DNA of 64,000 nt from sequence record KU686213.1, one strand, 5' to 3'. Positions 1-15,600 of this stretch are shown here, piece after piece. The translations under genes were made by a program, and so were the position numbers. Below the pieces are notes generated by a model. The model made no database searches, had not been told where the DNA came from, and saw only the letters and a list, made by a program, of their open reading frames with translations. The first letter of the stretch is position 1; every line of letters starts with the position of its first letter.

Positions 1-5
1 CTCAA

Positions 6-320
6 ATGCGCAAGATTGAAATCCAAATGAACCGCGCTGTTCAGTCTGGCACCAATTTCAGCCAAGCTAACACCTCAGTTCATCATCACGAGGGCGTAGC
101 AATTGTCCGCCTACACGGTAGCAAGATCGCTGAGGTAGGCGACGATTTCATCACTCTCTTCGATGGTGGCTTCCAATCCAATACTACCAAGAGCCGCCTC
201 AATGCCTTGATGGCTGAGTTCTGCTCACCCGGTGAGAACGTATTCCAGAAAGCTTACCAGTGGTTCATTCGCGCTAACGGCGTCACCATCCCATTTGAGT
301 CAGGTGTGACACTCCGCTAA
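6..320 (+). CDS. Hypothetical early protein (104 aa) of a type common in cyanophage hypervariable regions
   Basis: Clean ORF; its start context CTCAAATG is identical to the end of the cassette before ORF 1040, suggesting another cassette just upstream of the window. Confidence 0.75.
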   Translation: MRKIEIQMNRAVQSGTNFSQANTSVHHHEGVAIVRLHGSKIAEVGDDFITLFDGGFQSNTTKSRLNALMAEFCSPGENVFQKAYQWFIRANGVTIPFESGVTLR

Positions 321-321
321 A

Positions 322-387
322 CTGGCACACGCTCCCTAGCGGGAGCTCCCCCAGCTGCTACAATTGATTCATACCAAAGGAACCACA
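322..387 (+). promoter_or_regulatory. Early cassette copy 1: TGGCAC box, hairpin GCTCCC-TAGC-GGGAGC, -10 TACAAT (359-364), leader ATTCATACCAAA, RBS
   Basis: Shares GCTGCTACAATTGATTCATACCAAA with copies 2 and 3. Confidence 0.8.
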
Positions 388-957
388 ATGAACACCTTTC
401 TGACCTCCTCATTCCAAAACGTTCGCTCTTCAAAGCGTACTGACGAACTCCACACCGTCTTGCTAGCTGAGGTACTGGAAGCTAACCCCCAGTGGGCAGG
501 CTACGACTGGCAGTTCGAATACCGCCTTCCCGTTGACGGCTTCGGTGGAACCTTTGATATTGATATCGCCGGTTTCGTCAACGGTGAGCTGAAGGTGGCT
601 GTCCTGGCTAAGGCAATGAACTCAAACGTCAATAAGAATATCAAAAACTACGCTAACACCACCATTGGCGAAGCTGCCCGTCTGACCTATGCCCCTGGCT
701 TAGACCTCGAGGCTGTGCTCTTCGTTTCAGTCCTTCCCCGCACTGCCCCCCGCTTCAATAAGGCAGGCGAGGTTGTGGGACTTGACAACGTGCTAAGCGC
801 TAAGGCTCGCACCAACATCGGCAATATCATCGAAGCTCAGTACGGTGGGCTGGTTCAGGTCATCGACCTATTCTTCGATATCGACAATATCTCAGAGATG
901 CTGACCTCTGCCGACTTTCAAACTATCACCGTATCGAACGTCGATAAGGTGAGCTAA
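388..957 (+). CDS. Putative PD-(D/E)XK / restriction-endonuclease-like protein (189 aa from ATG 388)
   Basis: ORF; acidic/lysine pattern E..L..D.FGG.FDIDI...AK; ATG 388 follows the cassette RBS (track start 364 lies inside the promoter). Confidence 0.5.
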   Translation: MNTFLTSSFQNVRSSKRTDELHTVLLAEVLEANPQWAGYDWQFEYRLPVDGFGGTFDIDIAGFVNGELKVAVLAKAMNSNVNKNIKNYANTTIGEAARLTYAPGLDLEAVLFVSVLPRTAPRFNKAGEVVGLDNVLSAKARTNIGNIIEAQYGGLVQVIDLFFDIDNISEMLTSADFQTITVSNVDKVS

Positions 958-1039
958 GCCAATTGAGCCACTGGCACAAGGGAGCGGCACAGCTCCCCCC
1001 AGCTGCTACAATTGATTCATACCAAACAAAGGAACTCAA
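958..1039 (+). promoter_or_regulatory. Early cassette copy 2: GCCA-N10-TGGC palindrome, hairpin GGGAGC-GGCACA-GCTCCC, -10 TACAAT (1007-1012), leader, RBS
   Basis: Direct repeat of copies 1 and 3. Confidence 0.8.
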
Positions 1040-1318
1040 ATGAAAATCTCACTCGATCAGCAAGTCGCTCAACTCGCAGCCGAAGGTCATCAAGAGATTG
1101 CAGTCATCAAACTCCCTAGTCAGGCAACCCGCAAGCGTCGCAAGCCTAGCAAGCGTCGCACTACCTCTACGAATGCGGTCAGCCAAACTGCCTACACTCA
1201 AACCGAGAGCCGCAACCTAGGCAAGATCAATTCAGCCTATGCGCGTCAGCATAGTGCCGATAGGAGGGCAGCAGCTCAACAGCGAGCAGCCGAGCTTAAA
1301 GGTCAGCCAATCTTCTAA
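1040..1318 (+). CDS. Hypothetical basic (Arg/Lys-rich) early protein, 92 aa
   Basis: ORF with RBS AAAGGA from the cassette; RKRRKPSKRR stretch. Confidence 0.75.
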   Translation: MKISLDQQVAQLAAEGHQEIAVIKLPSQATRKRRKPSKRRTTSTNAVSQTAYTQTESRNLGKINSAYARQHSADRRAAAQQRAAELKGQPIF

Positions 1319-1388
1319 GAGGCACAAGGGGGCTAGGCAAGCCCCCACCAGCTGCTACAATTGATTCATACCAAACAAGGAACCCACA
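1306..1388 (+). promoter_or_regulatory. Early cassette copy 3: hairpin GGGGGCT-AGGCA-AGCCCCC, -10 TACAAT (1356-1361), leader, RBS
   Basis: Direct repeat of copies 1 and 2. Confidence 0.8.
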
Positions 1389-1835
1389 ATGGCTACTCTC
1401 AACTATTCACCCGCTCAGCAGACTCAACTCATTGAGTTCTATCAGCAATGGCTGCCTAGAGTCAATGCCTTCGGATACGACAATCTCCCCGACGGTTATC
1501 ACACATACTACCGCCACGGCAAGAAGCTGGCTAAGGCAGCAGCAGCCGCTAAGATAGTCGAAGCTAAAGCAGCGCGTCGTCGTGGCAATCCATACCTCCG
1601 TCCCGAAGTTGAATTTATTGTGCATAGCTACGTTCGGACCGATAGTCCTTCTATCGTTGCCGACGAATTTAAGGCAGCTTTTATCGACTCTCCCCATAGT
1701 CGCGAGAGCGTCCGCTCTTGTGCTGGGCAGCTTCGCTCATTAGACAACCTCTGCCCCGACGATACGGGCTGGACTGTAAAAAGCCTAGTCGCAGAAGTAG
1801 CTAGCGAATTATACCCCGAGCGCTTCGCCGCATGA
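1389..1835 (+). CDS. Hypothetical early protein, 148 aa
   Basis: ORF directly after the cassette RBS. Confidence 0.75.
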   Translation: MATLNYSPAQQTQLIEFYQQWLPRVNAFGYDNLPDGYHTYYRHGKKLAKAAAAAKIVEAKAARRRGNPYLRPEVEFIVHSYVRTDSPSIVADEFKAAFIDSPHSRESVRSCAGQLRSLDNLCPDDTGWTVKSLVAEVASELYPERFAA

Positions 1836-1841
1836 TTCTAT

Positions 1842-1906
1842 CAAGGGGCTAGCCACCTAGCCCCGATCTATGGTACAATTCATTCATACCAAACCAGGAA
1901 CCGACA
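1842..1906 (+). promoter_or_regulatory. Early cassette copy 4: perfect hairpin GGGGCTAG-CCAC-CTAGCCCC, -10 TACAAT (1874-1879), leader, RBS
   Basis: TATGGTACAATTCATTCATACCAAAC-CAGGAACC matches the other copies. Confidence 0.8.
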
Positions 1907-2125
1907 ATGCCTTTCTCACCTGCCTGCCGCCTTTCAGACCAGACCCGTGTATGGGTTGAGCGCTCAATCTATGAAGGGTGCGATTGGCAAATCGAAAAGC
2001 ACTTTGGACCAGCACAAGGGCAAGACGCCCAGACCATTGCCGCTCGCTTCGCTGCTACGTATTCAGAGGAGGGCAAGACGATGAGCCTAGCTAACCCCTG
2101 CAGCGGAATCAGAGCCGAAGATTGA
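1907..2125 (+). CDS. Hypothetical early protein, 72 aa
   Basis: ORF between cassette copies 4 and 5. Confidence 0.7.
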   Translation: MPFSPACRLSDQTRVWVERSIYEGCDWQIEKHFGPAQGQDAQTIAARFAATYSEEGKTMSLANPCSGIRAED

Positions 2126-2195
2126 CCAGCCAAGGGGGTTGACGGATCAGCCCCCTCTATGGTCTACAATTCTTACATACCAAACAAGGGAACCG
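2123..2195 (+). promoter_or_regulatory. Early cassette copy 5: hairpin GGGGGTTGA-CGGA-TCAGCCCCC containing -35 TTGACG (2139-2144), -10 TACAAT (2165-2170), leader, RBS AAGGGA
   Basis: Near-identical to copies 6 and 7. Confidence 0.85.
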
Positions 2196-2339
2196 ATGAA
2201 CGCCAAAATCTACATAGCATCGATGACCATTGGCTTCACGCTCTCCACCCTAGCCATTGTATTTGGGGCTATGTCCTTGGACTTCCAAGAGCCTTCGGCA
2301 GCAACCCCAGTTGCTCAAATCACCTGCCAAGGGGGTTGA
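2196..2339 (+). CDS. Small early membrane protein, 47 aa
   Basis: ATG 2196 after the RBS; hydrophobic N-terminal helix IYIASMTIGFTLSTLAIVFGAM; stop TGA lies inside the TTGAC of the next cassette. Confidence 0.65.
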   Translation: MNAKIYIASMTIGFTLSTLAIVFGAMSLDFQEPSAATPVAQITCQGG

Positions 2340-2390
2340 CGGATCAGCCCTCTATGGTCTACAATTCATTCATACCAAACAAGGGAACCG
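2325..2390 (+). promoter_or_regulatory. Early cassette copy 6: -35 TTGACG (2336-2341), -10 TACAAT (2360-2365), leader, RBS
   Basis: Near-identical to copies 5 and 7. Confidence 0.85.
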
Positions 2391-2597
2391 ATGACGACTC
2401 TTCACTCTATCGAAAATCTCACAGCCGAGCTCGACCGCCTAGAGGGAATCAAGAATCGCCTAGCAGGGCTGATCGTAGACCTTAAGCTCACCAACCCAGA
2501 CTCACTATTCATCGGACTCTATCAGGACCGCCTCAAGTTCAATGTTCTCCCCGCCATCAAACTCACCAAGGGCTACATTCTCAAGACCAGCAACTGA
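2391..2597 (+). CDS. Hypothetical early protein, 68 aa
   Basis: ORF between cassette copies 6 and 7. Confidence 0.7.
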   Translation: MTTLHSIENLTAELDRLEGIKNRLAGLIVDLKLTNPDSLFIGLYQDRLKFNVLPAIKLTKGYILKTSN

Positions 2598-2667
2598 CCA
2601 GCCAAGGGGGTTGACGGATCAGCCCCCTATGGTCTACAATTCATTCATACCAAACAAGGCAACCCAA
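2595..2667 (+). promoter_or_regulatory. Early cassette copy 7: -35 TTGACG (2611-2616), -10 TACAAT (2635-2640), leader, RBS
   Basis: Near-identical to copies 5 and 6. Confidence 0.85.
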
Positions 2668-2760
2668 ATGGACCCCATCTCATTCGCAATCGGTATGGTC
2701 GGCGCAGCTCTGGTCGGTATCGTCAACGCCGAGCTGATCAAAGCAAACAACAAAGATTGA
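2668..2760 (+). CDS. Small hydrophobic early peptide, 30 aa (MDPISFAIGMVGAALVGIVNAELIKANNKD)
   Basis: ATG 2668 after the cassette RBS; one predicted TM helix. Confidence 0.6.
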   Translation: MDPISFAIGMVGAALVGIVNAELIKANNKD

Positions 2761-2800
2761 TCAGCCCAGCTCATCCCACTCAATCAAAACTTTTTTTCAA

Positions 2801-3025
2801 ATGACTCCTTCCATCTTTATCGACACTGAGAACAGCTCAACAGCCGTTGATGCCATCGTGCTCACCCCCCGTAGAGTTCAGTTCGCTTGGGCGTCTGGTT
2901 CCGTCTCCGCTCACACCGTCCGCCTCCGCGATCAAGTGAGATTCTACATCCGCCACTTGATGCTCGATGAGGAGCTGAGCTATGGTGCTTGGTCCAACTG
3001 GGTGCTCGATAATCAAATCCTCTGA
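2801..3025 (+). CDS. Hypothetical early protein, 74 aa
   Basis: ORF; no cassette of its own, probably co-transcribed with 2668-2760. Confidence 0.65.
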   Translation: MTPSIFIDTENSSTAVDAIVLTPRRVQFAWASGSVSAHTVRLRDQVRFYIRHLMLDEELSYGAWSNWVLDNQIL

Positions 3026-3081
3026 CCCCTAGGCATCCTGCCCAATCCGTGCTACAATTCACTCAAGTCAATCAACCGACA
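3024..3081 (+). promoter_or_regulatory. Degenerate early cassette copy 8: -35 TAGGCA (3030-3035), 17-nt spacer, -10 TACAAT (3053-3058)
   Basis: GTGCTACAATTCA similar to the other copies; hairpin weak or absent. Confidence 0.6.
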
Positions 3082-3270
3082 ATGCTCAACATCACAGCCG
3101 ACCAGAATGGAACCATCTCTTGGCAAGAGGCTCTCCGCTTCGTGAATGAGGCAGCAGCTGATCAGCGCAACTTCCTCATCCGTGATTTCTTACAGTCTGC
3201 TTACGCTGGATTGAGAGGAGAGAGAATCGACCTAGGTGAGCTCAACGTCTGGATCACAGAGAACAGCTGA
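3082..3270 (+). CDS. Hypothetical early protein, 62 aa
   Basis: ATG 3082 in context AACCGACAATG, as in copy 4. Confidence 0.65.
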   Translation: MLNITADQNGTISWQEALRFVNEAAADQRNFLIRDFLQSAYAGLRGERIDLGELNVWITENS

Positions 3271-3278
3271 ATCACACA

Positions 3279-3302
3279 GCCTCCCGCAAGGGGGGCTTTT
3301 TT
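3279..3302 (+). terminator. Rho-independent terminator closing the early array
   Basis: GCCTCCC-GCAA-GGGGGGC followed by T6. Confidence 0.85.
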
Positions 3303-3565
3303 AATGCGTGCGTATCGACAGTACTCGTTCGTGATAGGACAGTGCTATCCATTCGTGCGTTGAGGACAGTGGTATGGCGTTGCGATCCATTGGGGGGTGG
3401 CGGCGTTACCTTCGTATATAAAAAGTACCTTCTATCTAAGCTATAAAAGTAAAGATCGACCTATACTTATCGCTATTTAAAAAATTCTCCCAGATATTCT
3501 ATGGACCACAGAGTTGGCTCAGAGTTGTCTCTATATTATACCACACTTCTTAAATATCCCCCCAT

Positions 3566-3600
3566 AAAAAAATCCCCCAGGTATTCAATGCCCCTAGGAG
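3566..3600 (-). terminator. Minus-strand intrinsic terminator
   Basis: On the minus strand CUCCUAGG/CCUGGGGG 8-bp stem (G-U pairs), 11-nt loop, then A-U7. Confidence 0.55.
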
Positions 3601-3708
3601 ATGATTATTATTAACTTGATAACATTCGCTTATCTCTGTGTAATCCCTCTACACAGAAGTATTGCGTATATCTTCAATAAGTACTTAAAGTGTCTTATCA
3701 ACCTCAAC
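3566..3708 (-). ncRNA. Candidate ~140-nt structured sRNA or primer RNA
   Basis: Bounded by a consensus sigma70 promoter and a terminator; stems TCTGTGTA/TACACAGA (3635-3657) and TTGATAA/TTATCAA (3616-3622/3695-3701); no convincing ORF. Confidence 0.45.
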
Positions 3709-3714
3709 AAGGCT
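3678..3714. repeat. 37-bp block, copy A (copy B at 51441-51477, 1 mismatch)
   Basis: TAAGTACTTAAAGTGTCTTATCAACCTC(A/G)ACAAGGCT read directly at both loci. Confidence 0.95.
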
Positions 3715-3743
3715 ATTCTACAAGTATCTCCGTGTGTTGTCAA
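3715..3743 (-). promoter_or_regulatory. Minus-strand sigma70 promoter TTGACA-N17-TAGAAT
   Basis: TGTCAA at 3738-3743, ATTCTA at 3715-3720, 17-nt spacer. Confidence 0.8.
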
Positions 3744-3870
3744 GCCCCCATCAAGAGTATCCCTTTAAGTATCTCAACCATCCCCTGACAAACTGCACAA
3801 GGCTATTTAGAGAGTCATAAAAGAAGTATTTTCATTGAGATGCCGTAGGCACACACCGTAGGTGTGTTAG

Positions 3871-3930
3871 TAGAGATACTTAAAGAACCATAGAGAATCT
3901 TAGAGAAACATAGAGGACCGCAGAGAGCGC
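3871..3930 (+). repeat. Six in-phase decamers, consensus TAGAGAANC(A/T)
   Basis: TAGAGATACT TAAAGAACCA TAGAGAATCT TAGAGAAACA TAGAGGACCG CAGAGAGCGC, exact 10-bp period. Confidence 0.8.
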
Positions 3931-4069
3931 GAAAAATCCCCCTCTCAAGTTATCTCCGAAGAGAGTATTACAGAGAGGGTTATACTATTACTAAGGAATA
4001 CCCATATACTCTACAACTCACTCCGAAGGGTATAGAAGAGCTTAGTGGTCAGGGGGGAAATATGCTGTG

Positions 4070-4077
4070 TATAAATA
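4070..4077 (+). promoter_or_regulatory. T4-type late promoter TATAAATA with no protein gene behind it
   Basis: Exact gp55 consensus. Confidence 0.65.
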
Positions 4078-4081
4078 GAAG

Positions 4082-4232
4082 TGGAATACAAGCCTAGGAG
4101 CGTCTCTAATAGGCTCTCATCCTACGGGGGATAGAGACACTCCGAGTTCCATTGAGGCTCCCCACAAAGGCATTTAGAGTACGTAGAAGAACATATAGTA
4201 ACGTAGAGGTCCATAGAGGTCCTCTTTTTTTA
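4082..4232 (+). ncRNA. Candidate late structured sRNA
   Basis: Late promoter upstream; stem GGAG-C-GTCTCTA/TAGAGAC-A-CTCC (4097-4143); terminator-like GAGGTCC/GGTCCTC plus T7 at 4205-4232. Confidence 0.35.
4175..4223 (+). repeat. Second phased TAGAG array (5 units, 9-10 bp period)
   Basis: TAGAGTACG TAGAAGAACA TATAGTAACG TAGAGGTCCA TAGAGGTCCT. Confidence 0.65.
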
Positions 4233-4283
4233 TGGGCGAACCCTTTTTATGACCCTAGGGGGCAAGCCCCCACAATGAGGACC

Positions 4284-4314
4284 CATAAATACCAATAGAG
4301 AATATTAACTTATT
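4284..4314 (+). promoter_or_regulatory. Late promoter plus leader, repeated before each of the three paralogs (also 5029-5059 and 5783-5813)
   Basis: (C/T)ATAAATAC(C/T)AATAGA(G/A)AATA(T/C)TAACTTATTATG in all three. Confidence 0.85.
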
Positions 4315-5028
4315 ATGGCAGTTAACATAAGCGGTAATGGAGCTATTGAGGGTATTACTTCTTTTAATGGGGAGGATATTGCTTCTTTTAATGAGGGAGG
4401 TCCTACTTTCCGCAATATACTCTTTAATGGTTGGGTGAACACCAGTATTGGAATAAACCAACGTGGCAAAACAATAGCTCAAGTTTCTAATGGGGAATAT
4501 TGGGCTGATAGGTGGCAACGTGTTTCATCCACAACTATGACCCAGAAGGTTGAAGGGGGTAACTATATACCAAATAGGACATATACGTTATCTGGTAATA
4601 ATGTAACAACAACACAAATCACATCCCCTGCTAGTGGAACTTGGGATTGGGGTACTGTGCCCTCCAATGCGTCATTGGTTCAGTTGGAGCTAGGTGATAC
4701 TGCATCTTCTTTTGAATATAGACCCTATGGGTTGGAAGTAATTTTGTGTCAGAGGTATTATGAAGTTGTTGATTGTGAATATGGTACAACCGCAGTACTT
4801 GATGCGGGGAATTCGAATAAAGCTATAAAAAAACCTTGGATATATAAAGTTAGTAAAAGAATTATACCAACCGCTATTGTAACTGCTCAAAGTGGTGCTT
4901 ATTCTACCAATGCTAGTGTGAGTGGAATACGAAGTTCTTTTTGCAATCTCAATTGGCAATGGCAACAGACATCTGGAAATTTTGATAGGACCAAGGCTGC
5001 TGTAGTTAACGTCGATGCCGAACTATAA
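4315..5028 (+). CDS. Putative virion or fibre-tip protein, paralog 1 (237 aa)
   Basis: FRN..NG..INQRG..Y.ADRW and QLE.G..AS.FE.R...LCQRYY motifs of a type common in cyanophage fibre-associated proteins; late promoter. Confidence 0.75.
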   Translation: MAVNISGNGAIEGITSFNGEDIASFNEGGPTFRNILFNGWVNTSIGINQRGKTIAQVSNGEYWADRWQRVSSTTMTQKVEGGNYIPNRTYTLSGNNVTTTQITSPASGTWDWGTVPSNASLVQLELGDTASSFEYRPYGLEVILCQRYYEVVDCEYGTTAVLDAGNSNKAIKKPWIYKVSKRIIPTAIVTAQSGAYSTNASVSGIRSSFCNLNWQWQQTSGNFDRTKAAVVNVDAEL

Positions 5029-5059
5029 TATAAATACTAATAGAAAATATTAACTTATT

Positions 5060-5782
5060 ATGGCAGTTAACATAAGCGGTAATGGAGCTATTGAGGGTAT
5101 TACTTCTTTTAATGGGGGCGGACTTACCTTTCGTAATATACTCTATAATGGGTGGGTAAACACCAGTAATGAAATAAACCAACGTGGCAAAACAATATCC
5201 GAGGTTTCTGATGGAGACTATTGGGCTGATAGGTGGCAACGTGTTTCCTCTACGACAATGACCCAAAAAGTTGAAGAGGGTAACTATATACCAAATAGGA
5301 CATATACGTTATCTGGTAATAATGTAACAACAGTGCAGGTAACATCACCTGCCAGTGGAACTTGGAATTGGGGAACTGTTCCCTCCAATGCTTCATTGGT
5401 TCAGTTAGAGTTGGGTGATACTCCATCTGCTTTTGAATATAGACCCAAGGGGTTAGAGTTGGGTTTGTGTCAGAGGTACTATCAAAATCTCAATGTTAGA
5501 ATGTTGTTAGATCAGGTGAATTATTTATTTTCTTCTCGCAATTCTTATGTTAATCCAATGCGAACTGCACCATCAGTAGGTTTTACAGGTAAGTTAAAGT
5601 GGGATGATTTAATTACCGGGCAGTTAAGTTCTTCTGGATTTGATTCGGATAATGTTAATGTTTCATCTAAGGTGATTCGGGCAACACAATTTTACGTTTA
5701 TGTTGCGTTGTCGGGGGTTCAGCCGAATGTCTTTAAAAGGTATCAATTTGAAGAGGCTATTAGCCTTGATGCCGAACTATAA
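5060..5782 (+). CDS. Putative virion or fibre-tip protein, paralog 2 (240 aa)
   Basis: Same N-terminal ~140 aa as paralog 1, divergent C-terminus, ends DAEL. Confidence 0.75.
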   Translation: MAVNISGNGAIEGITSFNGGGLTFRNILYNGWVNTSNEINQRGKTISEVSDGDYWADRWQRVSSTTMTQKVEEGNYIPNRTYTLSGNNVTTVQVTSPASGTWNWGTVPSNASLVQLELGDTPSAFEYRPKGLELGLCQRYYQNLNVRMLLDQVNYLFSSRNSYVNPMRTAPSVGFTGKLKWDDLITGQLSSSGFDSDNVNVSSKVIRATQFYVYVALSGVQPNVFKRYQFEEAISLDAEL

Positions 5783-5813
5783 TATAAATACCAATAGAGA
5801 ATACTAACTTATT

Positions 5814-6488
5814 ATGTCAGTTAACATAAGCGGTAATGGAGCTATTGAGGGTATTACTTCCTTTAATGGAGGAGGGCTTACTTTCCGCAATATTCTTTAT
5901 AATGGTTGGGTGAACACCAGTAGTGAAATCAACCAACGTGGCAAAACAATAGCTCAAGTTTCTAATGGAAACTATTTTGCAGATCGATGGGAAAGAGTTT
6001 CATCCACAACTATGACCCAAAAAGTTGAAGAAAAAAATTATATACCAAATAGGACATATACGATATCGGGTACTAACGTAACAACAGTGCAGGTAACATC
6101 ACCTGCTAGTGGGACTTGGGATTGGGGAACTGTGCCGTCTGATGCTTCATTGGTTCAGTTAGAGTTGGGTGATACTGCATCTTCTTTTGAATATAGACCC
6201 TATGGATTGGAGTTGAGTTTGTGTCAGAGGTACTATCAGTTTGCATATGCTAATATTAGAGGTAGGGGTGGGGGTATTTCTGAAAATGCAGTAACCTGGA
6301 ATACTCAAATGAGAATAGCTCCAACAATATTGCGCATTGCGGCAGCTTCAGGTGGAGGTCTCAATAATATAATTCGATATCTTGATATAGCTCCCTATGG
6401 GTGTCGTATGGAAGCAACAAACACCCAACCTGGCGGTACGGAGAGTTATGCACTTGCGCAAATCTTGGAACTAAATGCTGAACTATGA
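5814..6488 (+). CDS. Putative virion or fibre-tip protein, paralog 3 (224 aa)
   Basis: Same N-terminal ~140 aa, divergent C-terminus, ends NAEL. Confidence 0.75.
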   Translation: MSVNISGNGAIEGITSFNGGGLTFRNILYNGWVNTSSEINQRGKTIAQVSNGNYFADRWERVSSTTMTQKVEEKNYIPNRTYTISGTNVTTVQVTSPASGTWDWGTVPSDASLVQLELGDTASSFEYRPYGLELSLCQRYYQFAYANIRGRGGGISENAVTWNTQMRIAPTILRIAAASGGGLNNIIRYLDIAPYGCRMEATNTQPGGTESYALAQILELNAEL

Positions 6489-6574
6489 TTGGATTTATTG
6501 TAATACTATTATTCTTTCTTGGGATTATGGGTCTTATGACCTTCCTTTCCGTTTTTGGTGATTGGTTTGTATAG
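6485..6574 (+). CDS. Small membrane peptide, 29 aa (MIGFIVILLFFLGIMGLMTFLSVFGDWFV)
   Basis: ATGA overlap with the stop of paralog 3; entirely hydrophobic; below the ORF-track cutoff. Confidence 0.5.
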   Translation: MIGFIVILLFFLGIMGLMTFLSVFGDWFV

Positions 6575-6653
6575 TACAGTATATGAAGTGGTACATATTA
6601 ATAGATGCCCCCAGACCCATGGAGTATAATAACAAGGTATTCAGGAGGTTGAA

Positions 6654-6815
6654 ATGACTCAACTTTATGATATAATCATTGAAGGACAGACAATTCACAA
6701 AGGTGTTTCGGAAGAAACCTTCTTTGATGTTATGTCTGACCTCTCAACAGCATATTATGAGAGGGGCTATCCAGATCCCTCAACAGTTTCCCACACAACT
6801 TACATTAAGGAGTAA
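6654..6815 (+). CDS. Small hypothetical protein, 53 aa (MTQLYDIIIEGQ...)
   Basis: RBS AGGAGG at ~6643, -10 TATAAT at 6625-6630; resembles small ORFs near g25 in cyanophages (recalled). Confidence 0.7.
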   Translation: MTQLYDIIIEGQTIHKGVSEETFFDVMSDLSTAYYERGYPDPSTVSHTTYIKE

Positions 6816-6817
6816 CA

Positions 6818-6952
6818 ATGTTCGGCAAGACACAGGAAAAAATCGAAAAGGCTGGAAAAAAGACCCGTCAGGGTCGTTCCAACCGCACGAAACTCTCTGC
6901 AACTTCCGCGAGACCTAGGCAAAAGCGTTATCGTGGTCAAGGAAGGAGCTGA
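6818..6952 (+). CDS. Small basic protein, 44 aa (KKTRQG...KRYRGQG type)
   Basis: RBS AAGGAG at ~6807; motif recognised from cyanophage genomes. Confidence 0.7.
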   Translation: MFGKTQEKIEKAGKKTRQGRSNRTKLSATSARPRQKRYRGQGRS

Positions 6953-7017
6953 AATCCCCTTTTTAGTGCTCGAAAAACAAAACTAACCCTTTTTAGGGAC
7001 CCTACCCCTTCGGGGTA

Positions 7018-7025
7018 TATAAATA
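7018..7025 (+). promoter_or_regulatory. Late promoter TATAAATA, preceded by a TACCCC-TTCG-GGGTA hairpin
   Basis: Exact consensus. Confidence 0.75.
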
Positions 7026-7091
7026 TTTAAAGTTACGATGGGGATAGAACCCCCTTAAAAGTTCTAAAATGTAGTTTTTAGGACAAATTTA

Positions 7092-7208
7092 ATGGGAAGA
7101 CCCGTAGATCGCTCACCTGGCGTCGTTTTAGTCACCGATTATGGTGCTCTTGACCGCGCTCTCGCTCAAAAAGCTCGCCAAGAAGCCGAAAAAGCCAAGA
7201 AAAATTAA
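7092..7208 (+). CDS. Small hypothetical protein, 38 aa (MGRPVDRSPGVVLVTDYG...)
   Basis: SD AGGA at 7080-7083; late promoter upstream; terminator downstream. Confidence 0.65.
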   Translation: MGRPVDRSPGVVLVTDYGALDRALAQKARQEAEKAKKN

Positions 7209-7217
7209 ATAATCTTT

Positions 7218-7244
7218 AAAAAAGCTCCTTCGGGGGCTTTTTTT
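7218..7244 (+). terminator. Intrinsic terminator
   Basis: AAAAAAGCTCC-TTCG-GGGGCTTTTTTT. Confidence 0.85.
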
Positions 7245-7278
7245 ATGCCTATAAATAATGATAAATGTTGCTTATGCG

Positions 7279-7683
7279 ATGGCTGACGTAAATCGTATCT
7301 CTAGATCATTCAAAGACATCAGTTTATCGTTCCAGCCACATCCTGTAACGAAGGATATTGGTGTTTTGGTCAATGAAAGGGCAATTAATCGGTCAGTTCG
7401 CAATATTGTTCAAACAATTCCTGGCGAAAAGTTTTTCAATCCACTATTTGGGTCCAATGTTAGGTCTCAATTATTTGAAAACGCCAACTATGCCGTTGCT
7501 CTTGCGATTGAACAGGAAATTCTTACATCATTAAGGAATTTTGAGCCTAGAATTGCTAATGTTGGAGTAACAGCTAATTTATTCCCAGACAGGAATGAGT
7601 TTGACGTTACAGTTACATATGAAATTGTAGGACAAGCGTTTCCACCCCAAACTTATAACTTTATTTTAACGAGTACTAGGTAA
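7279..7683 (+). CDS. g25: Baseplate wedge subunit gp25
   Basis: FKDISLSF..HPVTKDI..L.NE.AI.RSVRNIV.T.PGEK.F.P.FGS gp25 signature; start moved to ATG 7279 because late promoter TATAAATA at 7250-7257 abuts the track start. Confidence 0.9.
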   Translation: MADVNRISRSFKDISLSFQPHPVTKDIGVLVNERAINRSVRNIVQTIPGEKFFNPLFGSNVRSQLFENANYAVALAIEQEILTSLRNFEPRIANVGVTANLFPDRNEFDVTVTYEIVGQAFPPQTYNFILTSTR

Positions 7684-9608
7684 TGGCTTTCACTAAGTTT
7701 ACAAATTTAGACTACGATCAAATTAGAGAGTCTATTAAAGATTATTTGCGAGCCAACTCAAACTTTAGTGGGTTTGATTTTGATGGTTCTAATTTTAGTA
7801 TCCTTATTGATACATTAGCCTATAATGCATATATCAACTCGGTAAATGCAAATATGATCGTCAATGAATCCTTTTTGGATTCTGCGACACTACGTAGAAA
7901 CGTTGTTTCATTGGCTGGTAACATTGGTTATCTCCCAAGATCACGCAAAGCTGCTAGAGCTAGAGTCAAGTTCACCGTACAGACCTCTTCTACGACCCCT
8001 ACGTTGACCTTGAAGGCAGGTCTAGTTGCTGTTGGGTCAGAAGCTAACAGTAGTTACGTATTTTCCATTCCAGAGGATATTACGACCACTGTGGTGAATG
8101 GTGTTGCTCAGTTTGGAACTGATGATGAGCCTATTGAGATCTACCAGGGAACATTTGCTAAGACATCATTTAATGTAGATACATCATTAGACCAGAGATT
8201 CATTATTGCTAACCCAGATCTAGACTATAGTACTCTAGTTGTTAGGATCAAGGATCCTAATGAAGTTGGGTTGGGTAAAGTATGGGAGCGTGTAGAGAAT
8301 ATTATTAAAATTGATAGTAATAGTGAAATTTATTTCTTAGCTGAAGTAAACCAAGAGAACTATGAACTTCTATTCGGTGATGATATCTTCGGCAAAGCTT
8401 TACAGAATGGTCAAGTAATTGATTCAACATATATTGTAACAAAAGGTAAAGAAGGTGATGGTCCAGCTAACTTTACATTCTCTGGTTCTCTAGTTAATGA
8501 TAATGGAGCAATTACTGCACCTTCTAACGTCATCACTGTAGATACTCTAGAATCGGCTAGAAACGGTGCAGACATAGAGACGGTAGATTCTATCAAGTAC
8601 TATGCTCCCCGCGTGTATGGAGCCCAATACAGGGCTGTGACGGGGCGTGACTACGAAGGCATCATTAAGAGCATCTATCCAAACACAGAATCCGTTTCTG
8701 TCGTTGGTGGTGAAGAACTTGTACCCCCACAATTTGGTAATGTATTAATTAGTATTAAGCCAGTAAATGGTCTTGATGTTAGTGACTTTGATAAGAAGCA
8801 AATCTTAGATGGATTAAAGCAATATACTATTGCGGGTATTAATCAAAAAATTGTAGACCTTAAAATTCTATTTGTTGAGCTTGATGCTTCTGTATACTAT
8901 GATGTTACTAAAGTTGGTAACTCAAATACACTGAAGACTGATATTATGCGGTCACTAAACTCATATTCAACTTCTATTGATATTAATAAGTTTGGTGGTA
9001 GATTTAAGTACTCTAAAGTGCAAAAAGTTATTGACGATACTGATATTGCTGTAACTTCCAACATCACTAAAGTTATTGTTAGAAGAAACCTAAATGCTGT
9101 TCTAAATCAGTTTGCTCAATATGAGCTTTGCTATGGAAATGCGTTCCATCCGATTGCATCTGGTGGTTCTATTAAGAGTAGTGGATTTACTATTGCTGGT
9201 TCACCATCCACTCTATACATAACAGATGCTCCAAACAAGGATAATAATGGAAACTTGGATGGGTCTGGTATGGGTACCATATCATTCATCAGTGAAAATA
9301 TTAATTCTACAGGTTCCTCCAATTACATAACTGTTGTTGAAGATGCTGGCTTTGTTGACTATGCAAAAGGTGAGATTCAGTTATTTACTACAAATATAAC
9401 CGGCACATCATTACCTAATGAGATTATTGAAATACAAGCATATCCAAATTCAAATGACGTTATTGGATTGAAGGATTTATATGTCGTATTTGATGTTTCT
9501 ACTAGTAGGATAAATATGGTTAAGGATACAATTTCTAGTGGTGAACAGATCTCTGGTGTTGGATTCCCAGTAACATCAAGTTACGGAAACGGCAAACTAA
9601 CAAGGTAA
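7683..9608 (+). CDS. g6: Baseplate wedge protein gp6
   Basis: LDYDQI..SIKDYLRANSNF..FDF.GSNFSILID.LAYN; RAVT..DY motif; position after g25. Confidence 0.92.
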   Translation: MAFTKFTNLDYDQIRESIKDYLRANSNFSGFDFDGSNFSILIDTLAYNAYINSVNANMIVNESFLDSATLRRNVVSLAGNIGYLPRSRKAARARVKFTVQTSSTTPTLTLKAGLVAVGSEANSSYVFSIPEDITTTVVNGVAQFGTDDEPIEIYQGTFAKTSFNVDTSLDQRFIIANPDLDYSTLVVRIKDPNEVGLGKVWERVENIIKIDSNSEIYFLAEVNQENYELLFGDDIFGKALQNGQVIDSTYIVTKGKEGDGPANFTFSGSLVNDNGAITAPSNVITVDTLESARNGADIETVDSIKYYAPRVYGAQYRAVTGRDYEGIIKSIYPNTESVSVVGGEELVPPQFGNVLISIKPVNGLDVSDFDKKQILDGLKQYTIAGINQKIVDLKILFVELDASVYYDVTKVGNSNTLKTDIMRSLNSYSTSIDINKFGGRFKYSKVQKVIDDTDIAVTSNITKVIVRRNLNAVLNQFAQYELCYGNAFHPIASGGSIKSSGFTIAGSPSTLYITDAPNKDNNGNLDGSGMGTISFISENINSTGSSNYITVVEDAGFVDYAKGEIQLFTTNITGTSLPNEIIEIQAYPNSNDVIGLKDLYVVFDVSTSRINMVKDTISSGEQISGVGFPVTSSYGNGKLTR

Positions 9609-9624
9609 CAACAGGTATCTTAGC

Positions 9625-12600
9625 ATGATTGGTACTGGTATTGATGTGAGAGTGAAGATTCAAGATATTGTTTCTTCACAACTTCCCGAATTTATTTTAA
9701 GTGAAGCGCCATTAACTGATGACTTCTTAAAACAGTTTTATGTCTCCCAGGAATTTCAGGGAGGGGCAATTGATTTTGCTACAAATTTAGACCAGTACCT
9801 AGACCTAAACAACCTAAGTTCAGATTCTCTCTACGGCACATTTGAACTAACCCAAGATATATCATCCACAGATACTGAAGTATTTGTAAATACAACAAAA
9901 AGTTTCCCTGGCGAGTGGGGGCTCTTAAAGGTCAATGATGAAATCATGACCTATACTGGTATTACAACCAATTCTTTCACTGGCGTTGTAAGGGGCTTCA
10001 GTGGAGTAACTTCACTTCATGCTGAAGGTGCTCCCGAAGAGATTGTATTTAACGCCACAGAGGCTTCTAGCCACCTCTCAGGTGCTTCTGTAACAAACCT
10101 AAGCACATTATTCTTAAAGGAATTTTATAAAAAGCTCTCATACACATTTGCTCCTGGTTTTGAGGACCTAGATGTTGACTCTGAACTTGATGTAGGTAAC
10201 TGGATTCGACAGGTTCGTTCATTCTTCCAAACAAAGGGAAGTGAGGAGTCAATCATTATCCTCTTCAAAGTTTTATATGGAGAGAAGCCAACTGTTATTG
10301 ACTTGGAAGATTTCCTAATCAAGCCATCAACCGCAGAGTACTCTAGGAGAGATTATGCGGTAGCTATTCCTGTTGAAGGAAATCCAATTGACCTCAAAGG
10401 TAAAACTATTTTTCAAGTAGGCAGCCCCAATGTATTTGGTGCTGTTTCTGAGATTGAAGCATTTACTCGTGATGGGAGATTGTATTATAGGATTTATTTC
10501 TTCGTATCTAATGAAGAGGTATTGAATGAAAGAAAGCTATTCACAATTCCTGGAAGAACTCAATGCCAGAGGGAATGGAATCCTGGTGATACAACGCTCA
10601 CCGTAGATACTACTATTGGCTTCCGCGATAATGGTGAGTTCATAACAGCGGACGGCATTGTATTCAATTACGAACAGAGGAGTGTTAATCAATTCCTAGG
10701 TGTTACTTGTTCTGTTCCAACAAAGAAAGTTCTAATTACTGATGAGATCATTGACAATATAATTGTCTCTGGTATGAATGATCTTGGGGAAGAAGTTACT
10801 TTGCGCCTAACTGGAGTTATTTCTGATATTAATTTTGGTGATGATATTCCATTTAATTTCCAAGGTGAGAAAATTCGTGTAGATACTCTAGGTGAAAGTA
10901 TTTTAAGTAATATCGCTACCAGAGACGAATCAACCGTACCAGAAATTATTGCTAATAGCTTTGTATATAATACAAGTGTTAGATTTGAAGTGGAAAGTGT
11001 TAATGGTACTTCATTCATTTTATCAGCACCTTACTTAGACAAATCATCTATTGATGTTGGAGATACTGTTGATATCCTTCCACGTGGTGGTCAGAATGCT
11101 TATATCATAGGTGCTCCAGTTACCGAAGTTGATTTTGTTAACTCTACCGTTACAATTAATAACTCATTCGGTATTCCAGTTAACCAGTCACTGGATATTA
11201 GGAGAAATCAAAAATATGCTAATAGTAGTGGAGCTAGAATTGACTATGGTAACAATGCCGTACTATCAAATGTTTTGAACTTATATGATGGTAGAGAGTA
11301 TGATTCAAATTACTACGTAGCAACTAATTCACTACCATCCTATGAAATCTCTGCCAATATTGTAGAGAGTTCATTAGTTAGTCCAACACAACAGAGCTTT
11401 GATGATTTTAATAGTTTCACTGGTGAGTATTCAACTATTATCTTTGCGGGTGATGTTAATTTTTATACCGGGGATTTAGTTACTTATTCCGTAAGTGAAG
11501 GAGCAACTTCATTAACTGAAACTGGGGAATATTATGTTCAAGTTCTATCTGATAGAAGAAAGGTTAAGCTTTTTGTTTCTCCATCATTTATTGGAAGTGA
11601 GAATTCAGTTGGACTTGTATATACTCCAGACTCAGGCTCACATTTCTTTACTCTAGAAAGTCAGAAGACACGTGAAATTTCAACTAAGCGTATTTTTAGA
11701 AAAATTCCTGTATCTGATAGTTTAGTTGCTATTGATAGAACTCCTGAAGAAACTACTCCTGGTTCTATCGCAGTATTGACTAATGGTGTGGAGATTGTTT
11801 CATATAAGTCTCCAAATAAAGTATACCTGGGTCCACTTGAGAGATTAGATGTTGGATCACGTGGTGAAGGATATAGTGTAATATCTCCACCCAAAATCTA
11901 CATTGCCGAACCTGATGTTCAGCTATATGAAGGTGGTACTGGTAGTGTAGTTCCTACTAAAGCTACAAGTACTCCAGTAATTAAAGGTGAGTTAGAGGAA
12001 ATTCTAATTGACCCACAGGACTTTGATATTAAAGAAGTATTCAGTATCACCGTCAGGGGTGGTAATAGCCGTGGTGCATCAGCTGTTCCTATTATTGATA
12101 AAAAGAATAGGGAACTACCTTTTGATAGTAGAGTTACTACATTGGGTGGCGGTGTTAATCCTGATGATAACAGCATCCTTTTTCAGAGCAATCATAATTT
12201 AACAGAAGGAACTGCATTAGTTTATAATAACAAGGGTGCTGATAGTATTGGTATTACCCTTTCAGATAATACTGATTTTAGTACAGGTGCAACTCTTTCT
12301 AATGGTGGAGTTTATTATGCTAAAATATTAAACAATAGAACTATTCAATTATTCGAGACTTTAGAGTCTTTGAATAATGGTGGAGATCCAGTATTTCTAT
12401 CATCAAATCTAACTGGGTATGGTTTTCAGTCATTTGATACATTAAGGGCTGATAGATTGATTGGAGCAACAATCACTGATGATGGTGGAGACTTTTTCTA
12501 TAGAAATATGTCCTTCAATCCATCAAATGTATTTGATGAGTATGATGAAATCAGATACGTATCCCACGGATTTAATAGTGGGGATATTGTAGAGTATGGG

Positions 12601-15600
12601 ACTACTGGAACTGTTATTAGTGGAATGTCCACACAGAATCAGTACTATGTCTACAAAGTAAATGATAATGTACTAAAACTATCTGATGCCGGTATTGGAG
12701 CAACTATATCCAGCAACTATGATAGGTTGGAATTTGTTGACTTTAATAGTTCTGGTACAGGCACTCATAATATCAAATATCCAGACATCACAGCCGATGT
12801 TGTAGTTTCTTTTGCTAGTAGTGCAACTGGAACAATTGTAGCTAGTCCTATTATCCGTGGATCAATTGAACAAGTCTATACAGATGATGGTGGATATTAT
12901 GGTAGTGATATTATTAATTTTGAAAAAAATCCAGAAGTATATCCAATTGGTGGGTCACTGGCTAAATTATCACCATCAATTGTTAATGGGATTGTTAATT
13001 TTGTTCAAATTATCAATACTGGAAAAAACTACTCTGATTGTCCTGAATTAGTTGTTAGTGATTCTAGCGGCGCTGGAACTGGTGCTAAATTAAGGGCAGT
13101 TGTTGTAGACGGCGAAATAATAGATGTTATCATAATTAGTGGTGGTATTGGTTATAATTCGGCATCTACAACTATTGAAGTCCTTGAGACTGGTAGAGAT
13201 GCGCTAATTATTCCTAGAATTAGAGACCTAACAATCAATCTAAATTCTAGATTTGGATTTGAGGTTCTTAGTCAAAATAACTATAGGATCGTATCATATA
13301 ATAGAGTCCTTAGAGAAGGCGTTTATAGTGATGTTGGTAACTTCCACTCACCTATTATTGGTTGGGCTAATGATGGTAATCCAATTTATGGTGGTTTTGG
13401 TTTCTCCGACCCCCAGGATACTAACTCAGAAATCCGTGCTATGGAGACCGCATATGAATTGGCTCCCAATGATGTATATGGTAGACCTTCACAGACAGCA
13501 TATCCAGCTGGTTTCTTCATTGAGGATTACAAGTATGTTGATGGTGGTGACCTAGATGAATACAATGGTCGTTACTGCCGCACACCAGACTTCCCCAATG
13601 GTGTATATGCATACTTTGCTGGAATTTCACCAGACCCACAGTCAAGTGCTAGAGAGCCACAGTTCCCATACTTCATTGGACCTAAGTTTAGGGATTCTGC
13701 AATTGATTCAAATAGTACTAATGTTGATCAGAGCTTTGATCTTAATGATAAGCCAATCTTTAGAAATACATTCCCATACTATGTTGGGAGTCCAGTAGCT
13801 GGTAGTGAGTTCATCGATCAATCATATCTATTTGATATTCAGGATAGTATTGTACAATCAACTTCTCCAGGAACTATTGATTCCATTTCAATTGTTGGTG
13901 ACGGAAAAGATTACTCCGTTGGTGATGTACCTTTATTTAATTCTGATGAAGATTTTATCAGTGCTACTATATCTCAGGTAACTGGTATTGGTGTATCAGA
14001 AGTTAGAGAAAATACCCTATCTTACAGTAAGTTAGATACAGCAGTAATTAGATTAGATCAGAAAACTATTCGCATATATGTTTCCCCCAATCACCAATAC
14101 AATGATAACGACTCTGTTATTATTAGTGGATTAAGTACGATTACATCCACTATTAGTGGATCAAGAATTGTAAATATAGATAACTCAGCAATGACTCTAT
14201 ATTCACCAGTTCAGCCTATCGTAAATGATGGTGTTACTGATATATTTGTAAATTCAATATCTCAAAATGTGAGTGTTGGATCTTCAATTGAAATTGGTAA
14301 TCCCGGCGAAACTGAATTGGTAAGTGTATTAAATATCTTCCCAATCAATAAGGCACTTCGTGTATATCGCCCTGTTGGGTTTAATACTGTCGCAAACATT
14401 GGTGATCTCGTATCACCATTACCAAACTTCTTTGATGTTAATGTTAGAACTCCCGAGTTTGAGTCCGAGCTTGACTATGCGTATAACTTCAATCCAAAAC
14501 AATCTTTAAGTATTGCTCCATCTCTTGGAGAATCTACTAGTAGAGTTTATAGTATTGGTAGTATTGATTACCCAATATCAGTACCTGCTGCGTCAATTTA
14601 TGCACCAAACCATCAATTTAAAAACTTAGAGGAAGTTGTATTTACTAAGCCAGCTAATGGTATTAGCCTTGATGGATTGGATTCAAATAATAATCCAGTT
14701 GTTGTTCCTATCATTGGCGATAGCCAAGTGCTGTATGTTCATAACATTTCCAAAGACTACATTGGGTTGAGATTTACTCCTAGTGACGAAGACATCATCT
14801 TCCTCACGGATGCTTCCGATCTATTCACATATTCTATAAAAACAAATAGGTTTGTTGAAACTGCAAACTTGGATAGAATTCGTGCCGAAGTCACTACTAT
14901 TAAACCTCATCAACTAAAGAATAATGATACTGTTACTATTAGTGTATCTGCGTTGAATTCTTCCGGCATTGGAACTGCTTCCGATGTTTATATTCAGTTT
15001 GATGAAATTTCGCAGTCATTGATCGTTGATCCAAAATTTGCTACATCAGCAGATATCTCAACTGAATTGAATCTCGTCTTCATTGAAGATCACGGATATA
15101 TTTTGGGAGACTATGTTTTATATGAGTGTGATGGAACTTCTATTTCTGGATTAACAACTCATTCCAAATATTTTATCATCCCATTTGATACCGATAGATT
15201 CTATCTAGCGGAAACTGCTATTGATGTTAAGATTGGATCTGAGCTTCCTATCATATTGGGTTCTACTGGTTCTGGTGAGCATAAGTTCTCCAAAGTTAAT
15301 CCAGAACTCAATATTACCGGCAATCACGATATATTGTTCGATGTATCTGATCCATCACTTTTAAATAGAGAGCTAAAGTTCTTCTACGATCAGAATCTAA
15401 CAGAAGTATTTGAGAATAATGGTATTGATCCCGTATTTGTTGTTAGTGGAGTTTCTAGTGAAGGAACTATTGGAGCAACTAAAGAGATTAGATTCTCTGA
15501 AAACAATCCTGGAGTAATTTATTACGGTATTGAGTCTGGTGGATACATCTCCACATCAGATACTAATGCAATCGCATATAACTCAATTAAGTATGTTAAT

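Follow-up and report, generated by a model that had tools for sequence, protein, structure and literature searches.

The stretch of DNA analysed here, referred to below as the window, is 64,000 nucleotides (nt) long and corresponds to positions 62001-126000 of KU686213.1, the genome record of Synechococcus phage S-CAM7, isolate 0910SB42. By direct comparison, window positions 1-9300 are 100% identical to this record at an offset of 62000. S-CAM7 is a T4-like cyanomyovirus (Kyanoviridae, Mazuvirus), and the T4-like character of its genome is evident from the presence of gp25, gp6, gp23 and related genes. Our subject is the beginning of the window, positions 1-3300, in which small open reading frames (ORFs) are preceded by copies of a short intergenic repeat, here called the cassette, that contains a hairpin, a promoter-like sequence and a shared leader. 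The array of cassettes and ORFs forms the end of a long run of small plus-strand ORFs, shortly before the baseplate genes gp25 and gp6.

Eight cassettes are found in the window, all on the plus strand, seven of them strong and one (copy 8) degenerate, at the places where a preliminary description of this DNA had put eight copies. A 20-nt search pattern covering both literal variants of the -10 hexamer and leader, built from window 359-378 and 1874-1893, gives seven matches in the 64 kilobases (kb), all on the plus strand within positions 1-2700. Shuffled sequences gave a mean of 0.10 matches, and none of 100 shuffles reached seven. The cassettes measure 55-80 base pairs (bp), and a repeat finder sorts the copies into families of 47-74 nt. 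When 13 copies were aligned, the order of the elements was upstream stop codon, distal box (window 322-330, for example), hairpin, short linker, -10 hexamer, shared leader, purine-rich stretch and ATG, with the -10 hexamer TACAAT invariant across the copies.

Cassette 1 (321-387) contains the distal box, a hairpin at 331-346 (free energy dG -15.9 kcal/mol, z-score -2.3), the -10 hexamer at 359-364 and the leader, followed by the start codon at 388. Cassette 2 (958-1039) has its hairpin at 980-997, the -10 at 1007-1012 and then the leader; its hairpin sequence varies between isolates and still pairs. In cassette 3 (1319-1388), the hairpin at 1328-1346 carries TAGGCA (1334) at its loop and is followed by a TG-extended -10 at 1356-1361 and the leader. 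Cassette 4 (1836-1906) has a hairpin at 1845-1864 (dG -15.3, z -2.9) with TAGCCA at 1850, a TG-extended -10 at 1874-1879 and the leader. Cassette 5 (2123-2195) begins with the TGA stop codon of ORF5 at 2123-2125, continues with a hairpin at 2133-2156 (dG -21.5, z -3.1) with TTGACG at its loop, and ends with the -10 at 2165-2170 and the leader. Cassettes 6 (2320-2390) and 7 (2595-2667) have hairpins at 2326-2358 (dG -19.4, z -2.9) and 2601-2633 (dG -22.6, z -4.3), TTGACG at 2336-2341 and 2611-2616, and -10 hexamers at 2360-2365 and 2635-2640, respectively, each followed by the leader. The degenerate cassette 8 (3026-3081) retains TAGGCA at 3030-3035, the -10 at 3053-3058 and an altered, partial leader. 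A literal search of the window places TACAAT at all eight of these -10 positions.

The preliminary description had reported hairpins rich in guanine and cytosine (GC), a -35 element at or near the hairpin apex, and stop codons inside the repeat, and each of these features is borne out. Stems are predicted in copies 1-7, with 6-14 pairs, dG of -15.3 to -22.6 kcal/mol and z of -1.3 to -4.3, and no hairpin is predicted in copy 8 (dG -3.9, z -0.2), which had been called weak. The -35-like hexamers lie in or beside the hairpin loop, 16-18 nt before the -10. The repeat includes the TGA codons at 2123-2125, 2337-2339 and 2595-2597, of which the second is part of the following hairpin's loop. All cassette copies point the same way and keep one register relative to the neighbouring stop and start codons, and no terminal inverted repeats or target duplications were found at the cassettes by repeat analysis.

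Two subtypes of the cassette are recognized. One, comprising copies 1-3 and five copies upstream of the window, has a weak -35 and a TG-extended -10, and the other, comprising copies 5-7, has TTGACG without the TG. Copy 4 is intermediate, as it combines the -10/leader variant of copies 5-7 with the TG extension and a weak -35. Five cassettes of the window are predicted promoters in a consensus scan that uses the hexamers printed by the scanning program. The distal box was also considered as a known type of promoter or activator site, a possibility dropped after inspection by eye, since its spacing and sequence fitted nothing testable. A scan of window 1-8000 against Rfam (E≤1) gave nothing on the cassettes.

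The array holds ten ORFs in the window, all on the plus strand. ORF1 (6-320, 104 amino acids) belongs to the Kyano_Gp96 family (Pfam PF23790, E=1.7e-44; phrog_554), and its own cassette lies upstream of the window at KU686213 61972. ORF2 (388-957, 189 amino acids; phrog_21547) occupies a hypervariable slot after ORF1 and has 445 unnamed homologs, in which acidic and lysine residues are invariant. A sequence search of the PDB with ORF2 gave nothing significant. Its AlphaFold2 model has a predicted local distance difference test score of 89.7, and the best Foldseek matches of this model, weak as they are (E≥1e-3, template modelling score 0.25-0.42), are nearly all proteins of the PD-(D/E)XK or restriction-endonuclease fold; from the predicted model, ORF2 is a probable nuclease of the PD-(D/E)XK type. 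ORF3 (1040-1318, 92 amino acids; phrog_36237) has a conserved N-terminal part of about 30 amino acids and a C-terminus that varies among relatives.

ORF4 (1389-1835, 148 amino acids) is an optional unit with three alleles among the isolates, and ORF5 (1907-2125, 72 amino acids; phrog_30762) is a backbone gene with 20 homologs behind cassettes. ORF6 (2196-2339, 47 amino acids, hydrophobic) is another optional unit, whose stop codon is the one in the cassette 6 hairpin loop. It is followed by ORF7 (2391-2597, 68 amino acids; phrog_3340) and by ORF8 (2668-2760, 30 amino acids), a hydrophobic mini-ORF with six homologs behind cassettes. ORF9 (2801-3025, 74 amino acids) has no cassette here, but its homologs in two metagenome contigs (L116 and L128) have one. 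Likewise, the last array gene, ORF10 (3082-3270, 62 amino acids; phrog_25802), has homologs behind a canonical cassette in seven contigs. Searches of the array ORFs against Pfam and PHROGs returned family names only and no function for any of them, and such matches would neither favour nor exclude the host-takeover or anti-defence roles that had been proposed. The ten ORFs show no mutual similarity at E≤1, and tandem duplication of one gene with its promoter was rejected as an origin of the array.

The window starts inside the array, because five further cassettes directly precede it in the genome. Across all 214 kb, the 20-nt -10/leader motif has 12 copies, every one of them on the plus strand and confined to a span of 5.2 kb (59474-64635) that coincides with an island of about 52% GC. 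The full array is about 5.8 kb long, with 12 canonical cassettes and the one degenerate copy. As had been described, the region is GC-richer than its surroundings, the GC content being 0.52 in window 1-3000, about 0.38 downstream and about 0.35-0.45 in most of the remainder. The excess is most marked at third codon positions: the GC content at these positions (GC3) is 0.51-0.67 in the ten array ORFs and 0.23-0.41 in the other downstream genes tested, except 0.48 in the major capsid gene. A canonical intrinsic terminator, with an 8-bp GC stem followed by a T-run, was identified by a terminator scan at 3278-3297, within the interval 3278-3303, on the plus strand; it closes the array, and GC content falls after it. 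Among cultured phages, cassette matches are confined to S-CAM7 records.

Gene content of the array differs among the three S-CAM7 isolates, which are otherwise close relatives. The isolates compared with 0910SB42 were 0809CC03 (MT586120) and 0910CC49 (KU686212/NC_031927). In 0910CC49, exactly 197 bp are deleted, corresponding to the core of cassette 5 plus ORF6; a single chimeric cassette remains, with its junction at the 5′ border of the repeat. In 0809CC03, ORF2 is replaced by an unrelated ORF of 196 amino acids without detectable similarity; sequence identity ends at the start codon and returns at the stop codon. The ORF4 alleles have also diverged; that of 0809CC03 has 31% amino-acid identity, and that of 0910CC49 shares only the first 64 amino acids. 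Because the genome of 0910SB42 is like 0910CC49 to the left of ORF4 and like 0809CC03 to the right of it, it is a mosaic. Eight of the 15 identity breakpoints fall in cassettes (within 10 nt), compared with 23% expected from their share of the region (binomial p=0.010), although this enrichment is modest and could be yielded by selection, because breaks inside unrelated ORFs cannot recombine or would not survive.

Wider sampling gave the same picture of variation by units. We collected 158 units from the three isolates, five IMG/VR contigs and 60 metagenome contigs, from which 127 unique upstream regions were obtained; as the metagenome contigs were picked by exact motif match, conservation of the motif is overestimated in this set. 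The one cassette type precedes 39 ORF families. In chains of adjacent units, the slot after ORF1 is occupied by at least seven unrelated ORFs of 68-249 amino acids. ORF4 is present between ORF3 and ORF5 in five and absent in eight of 13 informative adjacencies, ORF6 is present in three and absent in eight of the adjacencies from ORF5 to ORF7, and some contigs have extra units inserted between backbone genes. An IMG/VR relative (L014), with about 80% protein identity, lacks both ORF4 and ORF6, has a third unrelated ORF after ORF1, and contains chimeric cassettes (at 787, 1084 and 1751) in which a box and hairpin of the S-CAM7 type are followed by another -10 and leader. Thus, ORF gain and loss at cassette boundaries, which the preliminary description had suggested looking for in relatives, was found in isolates and metagenome contigs, and the opposite outcome that it had named, a fixed order with no cassette-bounded indels, was not.

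The population of cassettes has an internal logic like that of promoters. Among the 127 unique cassettes, the -10 is TG-extended in 61%, and the -35 matches consensus at five or more of six positions in 18%. A negative association between these features (odds ratio 0.21, p=0.0018) suggests that one compensates for the other, which is what genuine promoters of this type would show. In 85 of the 127, there is an uninterrupted stem of 5 bp or more; it has 49 different sequences, and its end is most commonly 8-9 nt upstream of the -10. The mean hairpin dG is -13.2, compared with -8.8 for shuffles, and compensatory changes occur in three of six consensus pairs of a small alignment. With 49 different stems at a preferred distance from the -10, the hairpin is conserved as a structure, not as a sequence. 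The leader and start region are unstructured (minimum free energy -0.7 to -7.4 kcal/mol, with z>0 in five of seven), the median gap from the conserved leader to the ATG is 13 nt, and a box-like match is found in about 39% of the unique cassettes.

This anatomy resembles that of promoter early stem-loop (PeSL) cassettes, which are known in the T4-like phages phi1/RB49, T4/PST and KVP40/nt-1, and for which promoter activity, terminator activity and mini-circles have been shown experimentally (PMC2839356; PMC4122927). The preliminary description had pointed to PeSLs, and the likeness holds against the published definition (PMC2839356). Both elements are intergenic repeats made of an upstream stop codon, a sigma-70-type promoter (a predicted one in S-CAM7), a stem-loop with a G-run and a C-run, a ribosome-binding site and a start codon; both are clustered in a plastic small-ORF region of a T4-like genome, and in both the stem-loop may overlap the -35. 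In both, relatives differ by ORF insertion, deletion and replacement at the cassettes, with crossovers at various cassette points. On the other hand, S-CAM7 has a cyanobacterial host and an unrelated cassette sequence. Instead of the AT-rich stretch before the -35 of PeSLs, it has a GC-rich context (cassette GC 0.47-0.55) and a conserved distal box. Its stem-loop position is nearly fixed, one 5′ leader is common to all copies, and the array as a whole forms an island of high GC3 within an AT-richer genome. At the sequence level, the S-CAM7 cassettes share most of the features by which PeSLs were defined by Arbiol et al., as extended by Comeau et al.

The literature that we searched contains no paper describing PeSLs in a cyanophage, and PeSLs are not mentioned by Sullivan 2010. 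The same literature gave no confirmation of palindrome-containing early promoters in T4-like cyanophages, which the preliminary description had mentioned. In S-PM2, few PeSLs were found and the mechanism was judged unlikely there (PMC4503421). The S-CAM7 array is a PeSL-like system of a kind that seems to have no earlier description from cyanophages. Sigma-70-like early promoters have been reported for the cyanomyoviruses S-PM2 and Syn9 as promoter motifs only, and unmodified host RNA polymerase is believed to transcribe early genes from such motifs (PMC2984593). The S-CAM7 units may also be compared with lambdoid morons. A moron is likewise one accessory gene placed between other genes, equipped with a promoter and, downstream, a stem-loop. 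In contrast to S-CAM7, where the flank is a shared element, morons lack a shared flanking repeat and are thought to come by illegitimate recombination (PMC2839356).

We conclude that window 1-3300 is probably the distal part of a PeSL-like cassette array, in which composite regulatory units mediate the homologous exchange of units. In this mechanism, the stop codon in a cassette would close the upstream ORF, and the GC-rich stem-loop would come to lie at the 3′ end of that ORF's message, perhaps as an attenuator or a 3′-end stabilizer. To the next ORF, the cassette would supply a promoter of the kind used by the host's primary sigma factor, together with the common leader, which is CA-rich and unstructured and has a weak ribosome-binding site. 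With a -10 and leader of its own, each small ORF would therefore be an autonomous transcription unit, and the units would probably be expressed ahead of the late structural genes beyond the 3278 terminator.

Cassettes that are near-identical over tens of bases between unrelated ORFs could offer the sole homology to the phage recombination machinery. Recombination genes are annotated in the genome (UvsX-type, UvsY and gp46/47). The array had been called recombinase-free, which holds only insofar as the annotation lacks a site-specific recombinase. A single unit would be deleted or duplicated when neighbouring cassettes exchange unequally, and double exchange in the flanking cassettes between co-infecting relatives would replace the ORF in a slot. 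The pattern fits in-register homologous exchange, in which the cassettes would be the main but not the only homology patches, and it does not fit site-specific insertion of the integron type. We infer a causal part of the cassettes in the exchanges, beyond that of marking where these end, and likewise a role of the hairpin.

Several observations weigh against cassette-mediated exchange, in addition to the modest enrichment of breakpoints and the motif-based choice of contigs mentioned above. Seven of the 15 breakpoints lie inside ORFs, and the C-terminus of ORF3 and ORF4 were swapped as one block with one break within ORF3. In chains of adjacent units, no permutation of the backbone order was seen. 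With breaks inside ORFs and a conserved backbone order, the flanking conserved genes could supply part of the homology. In phage S-WAM1, ORF2 is found in a different slot and is framed by that phage's own box-hairpin-promoter cassettes, which exchange between identical cassettes does not explain; older transfers between systems must therefore use another route. About one third of the unique cassettes lack a good hairpin. No T-run follows the cassette hairpins, and the terminator scan flags none of them in the array, so that the stems are not canonical terminators and would be at best attenuators or stabilizers; the idea that they are canonical intrinsic terminators was rejected, as only the 3278 site passes the scan. 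Promoter activity, transcription start sites and early timing of the cassettes are inferred from their sequence.

These points leave room for the explanation that the repeats are only regulatory, being copies of a single strong promoter and leader, with a 3′ hairpin for the message upstream, kept alike by selection for expression, while genes change through recombination in conserved flanking genes or through illegitimate events. The cassettes would then mark gene boundaries and have no causal part. The conserved backbone order, the ORF-internal breakpoints with the block exchange of ORF3 and ORF4, and the other slot and cassette type of ORF2 in S-WAM1 would all be accommodated, and so would the lineage-specific promoter repeats, many of them without hairpins, of other cyanomyoviruses. 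However, it accounts poorly for the 197-bp deletion with both ends in the repeat, for unrelated ORFs swapped exactly from start codon to stop codon, and for the existence of chimeric cassettes and the concentration of breakpoints in cassettes. Moreover, where the neighbouring ORFs are unrelated, the cassette is the sole homology available. We hold it to be unlikely that regulation is the only role of the repeats, while giving the idea real weight.

The preliminary description had called the array integron-like. One-orientation, single-gene units, each bounded by a repeat whose hairpin structure is kept more than its sequence, with unit content varying between close relatives, do recall an integron. 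The comparison is nevertheless not supported, because each S-CAM7 unit has its own predicted promoter (-10 and leader), whereas integron cassettes are promoterless and read from a common promoter; the unit order is not permuted, and the junctions, several of them inside ORFs, are not at one defined site. No tyrosine-recombinase integrase with attI is among the annotated KU686213 features; the unannotated ORFs were not all searched.

A more specific version would make the box and hairpin a structure-specific, attC-like site, recognized by a dedicated protein, of the phage or the host, that would carry out the excision and insertion of cassettes or direct them. The same possibility was raised for PeSL stems by Arbiol et al. 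(PMC2839356), and the preservation of structure across the 49 stems at their preferred distance from the -10 would agree with it, as would the distal box, whose distance from the -10 is fixed at 27 nt in several cassette families of S-CAM7, and the related box in S-WAM1. Even so, we consider it very improbable, given that the 269 annotated genome features include no integrase or site-specific recombinase, that units are not reordered and junctions occur at various places in and outside cassettes, and that the hairpin is missing in one third of cassettes. It is harder still to believe that the cassettes are small selfish repeats, similar to miniature inverted-repeat transposable elements or repetitive extragenic palindromes (MITE/REP-like), that spread themselves into intergenic spaces and only resemble promoters. 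Such repeats would be short, hairpin-bearing, near-identical and intergenic, as the copies are, but they would not be expected in one orientation, one register and one island without terminal inverted repeats or target duplications, and the way in which -35 and extended -10 compensate for each other speaks for selection on promoter function.

We also entertain, as a speculation with a rather low chance of being correct, that the distal box and hairpin form a site for a dedicated factor of the phage or the host, which would either target recombination (attC-like, with no tyrosine recombinase) or couple termination to the next initiation. In that case, the island with its high GC3 would serve as an immediate-early module adapted to the codon pool of the GC-rich host, in the period before phage transfer RNAs (tRNAs) are made. 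No tRNA genes were found in the 64-kb window.

Base composition is raised in some other places as well. The major capsid gene (46766-48184; GC 0.51, GC3 0.48) is GC-richer than its neighbours, as are patches at 41-43 kb of the window. The median GC3 of Kyano_Gp96 genes in loci L014-L093 is 0.46, and in lineages L041, L043, L044, L060, L066 and L068 it reaches 0.61-0.64 with a locus GC of 0.40-0.43. The GC3 enrichment of gp96 is therefore not unique to S-CAM7.

Repeats built on a similar plan occur elsewhere. In the early region of S-CAM7 (record 30-59 kb), other cassette families follow the same order of box, 27 nt including a hairpin, -10 and CA-rich leader, for example at KU686213 36335, 39898, 41715, 45534, 57504, 57752 and 57990. 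In several of these families, a T-run follows the hairpin, making them true composite terminator-promoters. Loci around Kyano_Gp96 homologs were also examined in other cyanomyoviruses; of the 70 that measure 5 kb or more, 24 have dispersed promoter-type repeats of their own, in 3-9 copies just upstream of small ORFs, some with hairpins and an S-CAM7-like box; they include L022, L031, L036/L037, L049, L065, L074, L079, L086 and L088. The related box of S-WAM1 is seen in L154 at 3900-3960 and 4575-4640.

Between the array terminator and the next genes, about 1 kb (window 3300-4314) has no convincing ORF, although the annotation of one isolate calls ORFs there. This gap contains 10-bp-phased repeats at 3871-3926 and, facing the array, a near-consensus sigma-70-type promoter sequence of the minus strand (3743-3715) that matches at 11 of 12 positions. 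Parts of it are 72-77% conserved in L011 and L014, about like coding sequence. Beyond it lie three tandem paralogous ORFs at 4315-5028, 5060-5782 and 5814-6488 (237, 240 and 224 amino acids), with 83-87% nucleotide identity over about 480 nt. They have no Pfam match and are apparently absent from L014, which has nothing similar between its array and gp25. A sub-threshold Rfam match to STnc130 at 7212-7326 on the minus strand was taken as chance. An 8-nt T4-type late-promoter motif has no match in 1-3300 and matches at 4070, 5029, 5783, 7018 and 7250, among other places, which we do not use as evidence. Very large ORFs in the baseplate region, at 9625-22569 (4314 amino acids) and 24184-31371 (2395 amino acids), are named in the record as structural protein and virulence-associated structural protein, respectively.

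T4-like cyanophages are among the most abundant viruses of the ocean; their variable genes are mostly small ORFs, the turnover of which is poorly understood. PeSL-mediated shuffling is established in enterobacterial and Vibrio T4-like phages, and a dense array of the PeSL type is now found in a cultured cyanophage. Lineage-specific promoter repeats at about one third of the other cyanomyovirus loci examined suggest that the design is general. The cassettes also provide candidate promoter, leader and hairpin elements for marine Synechococcus, and they are a concrete, sequence-defined handle for tracking the flux of accessory genes in natural cyanophage populations.

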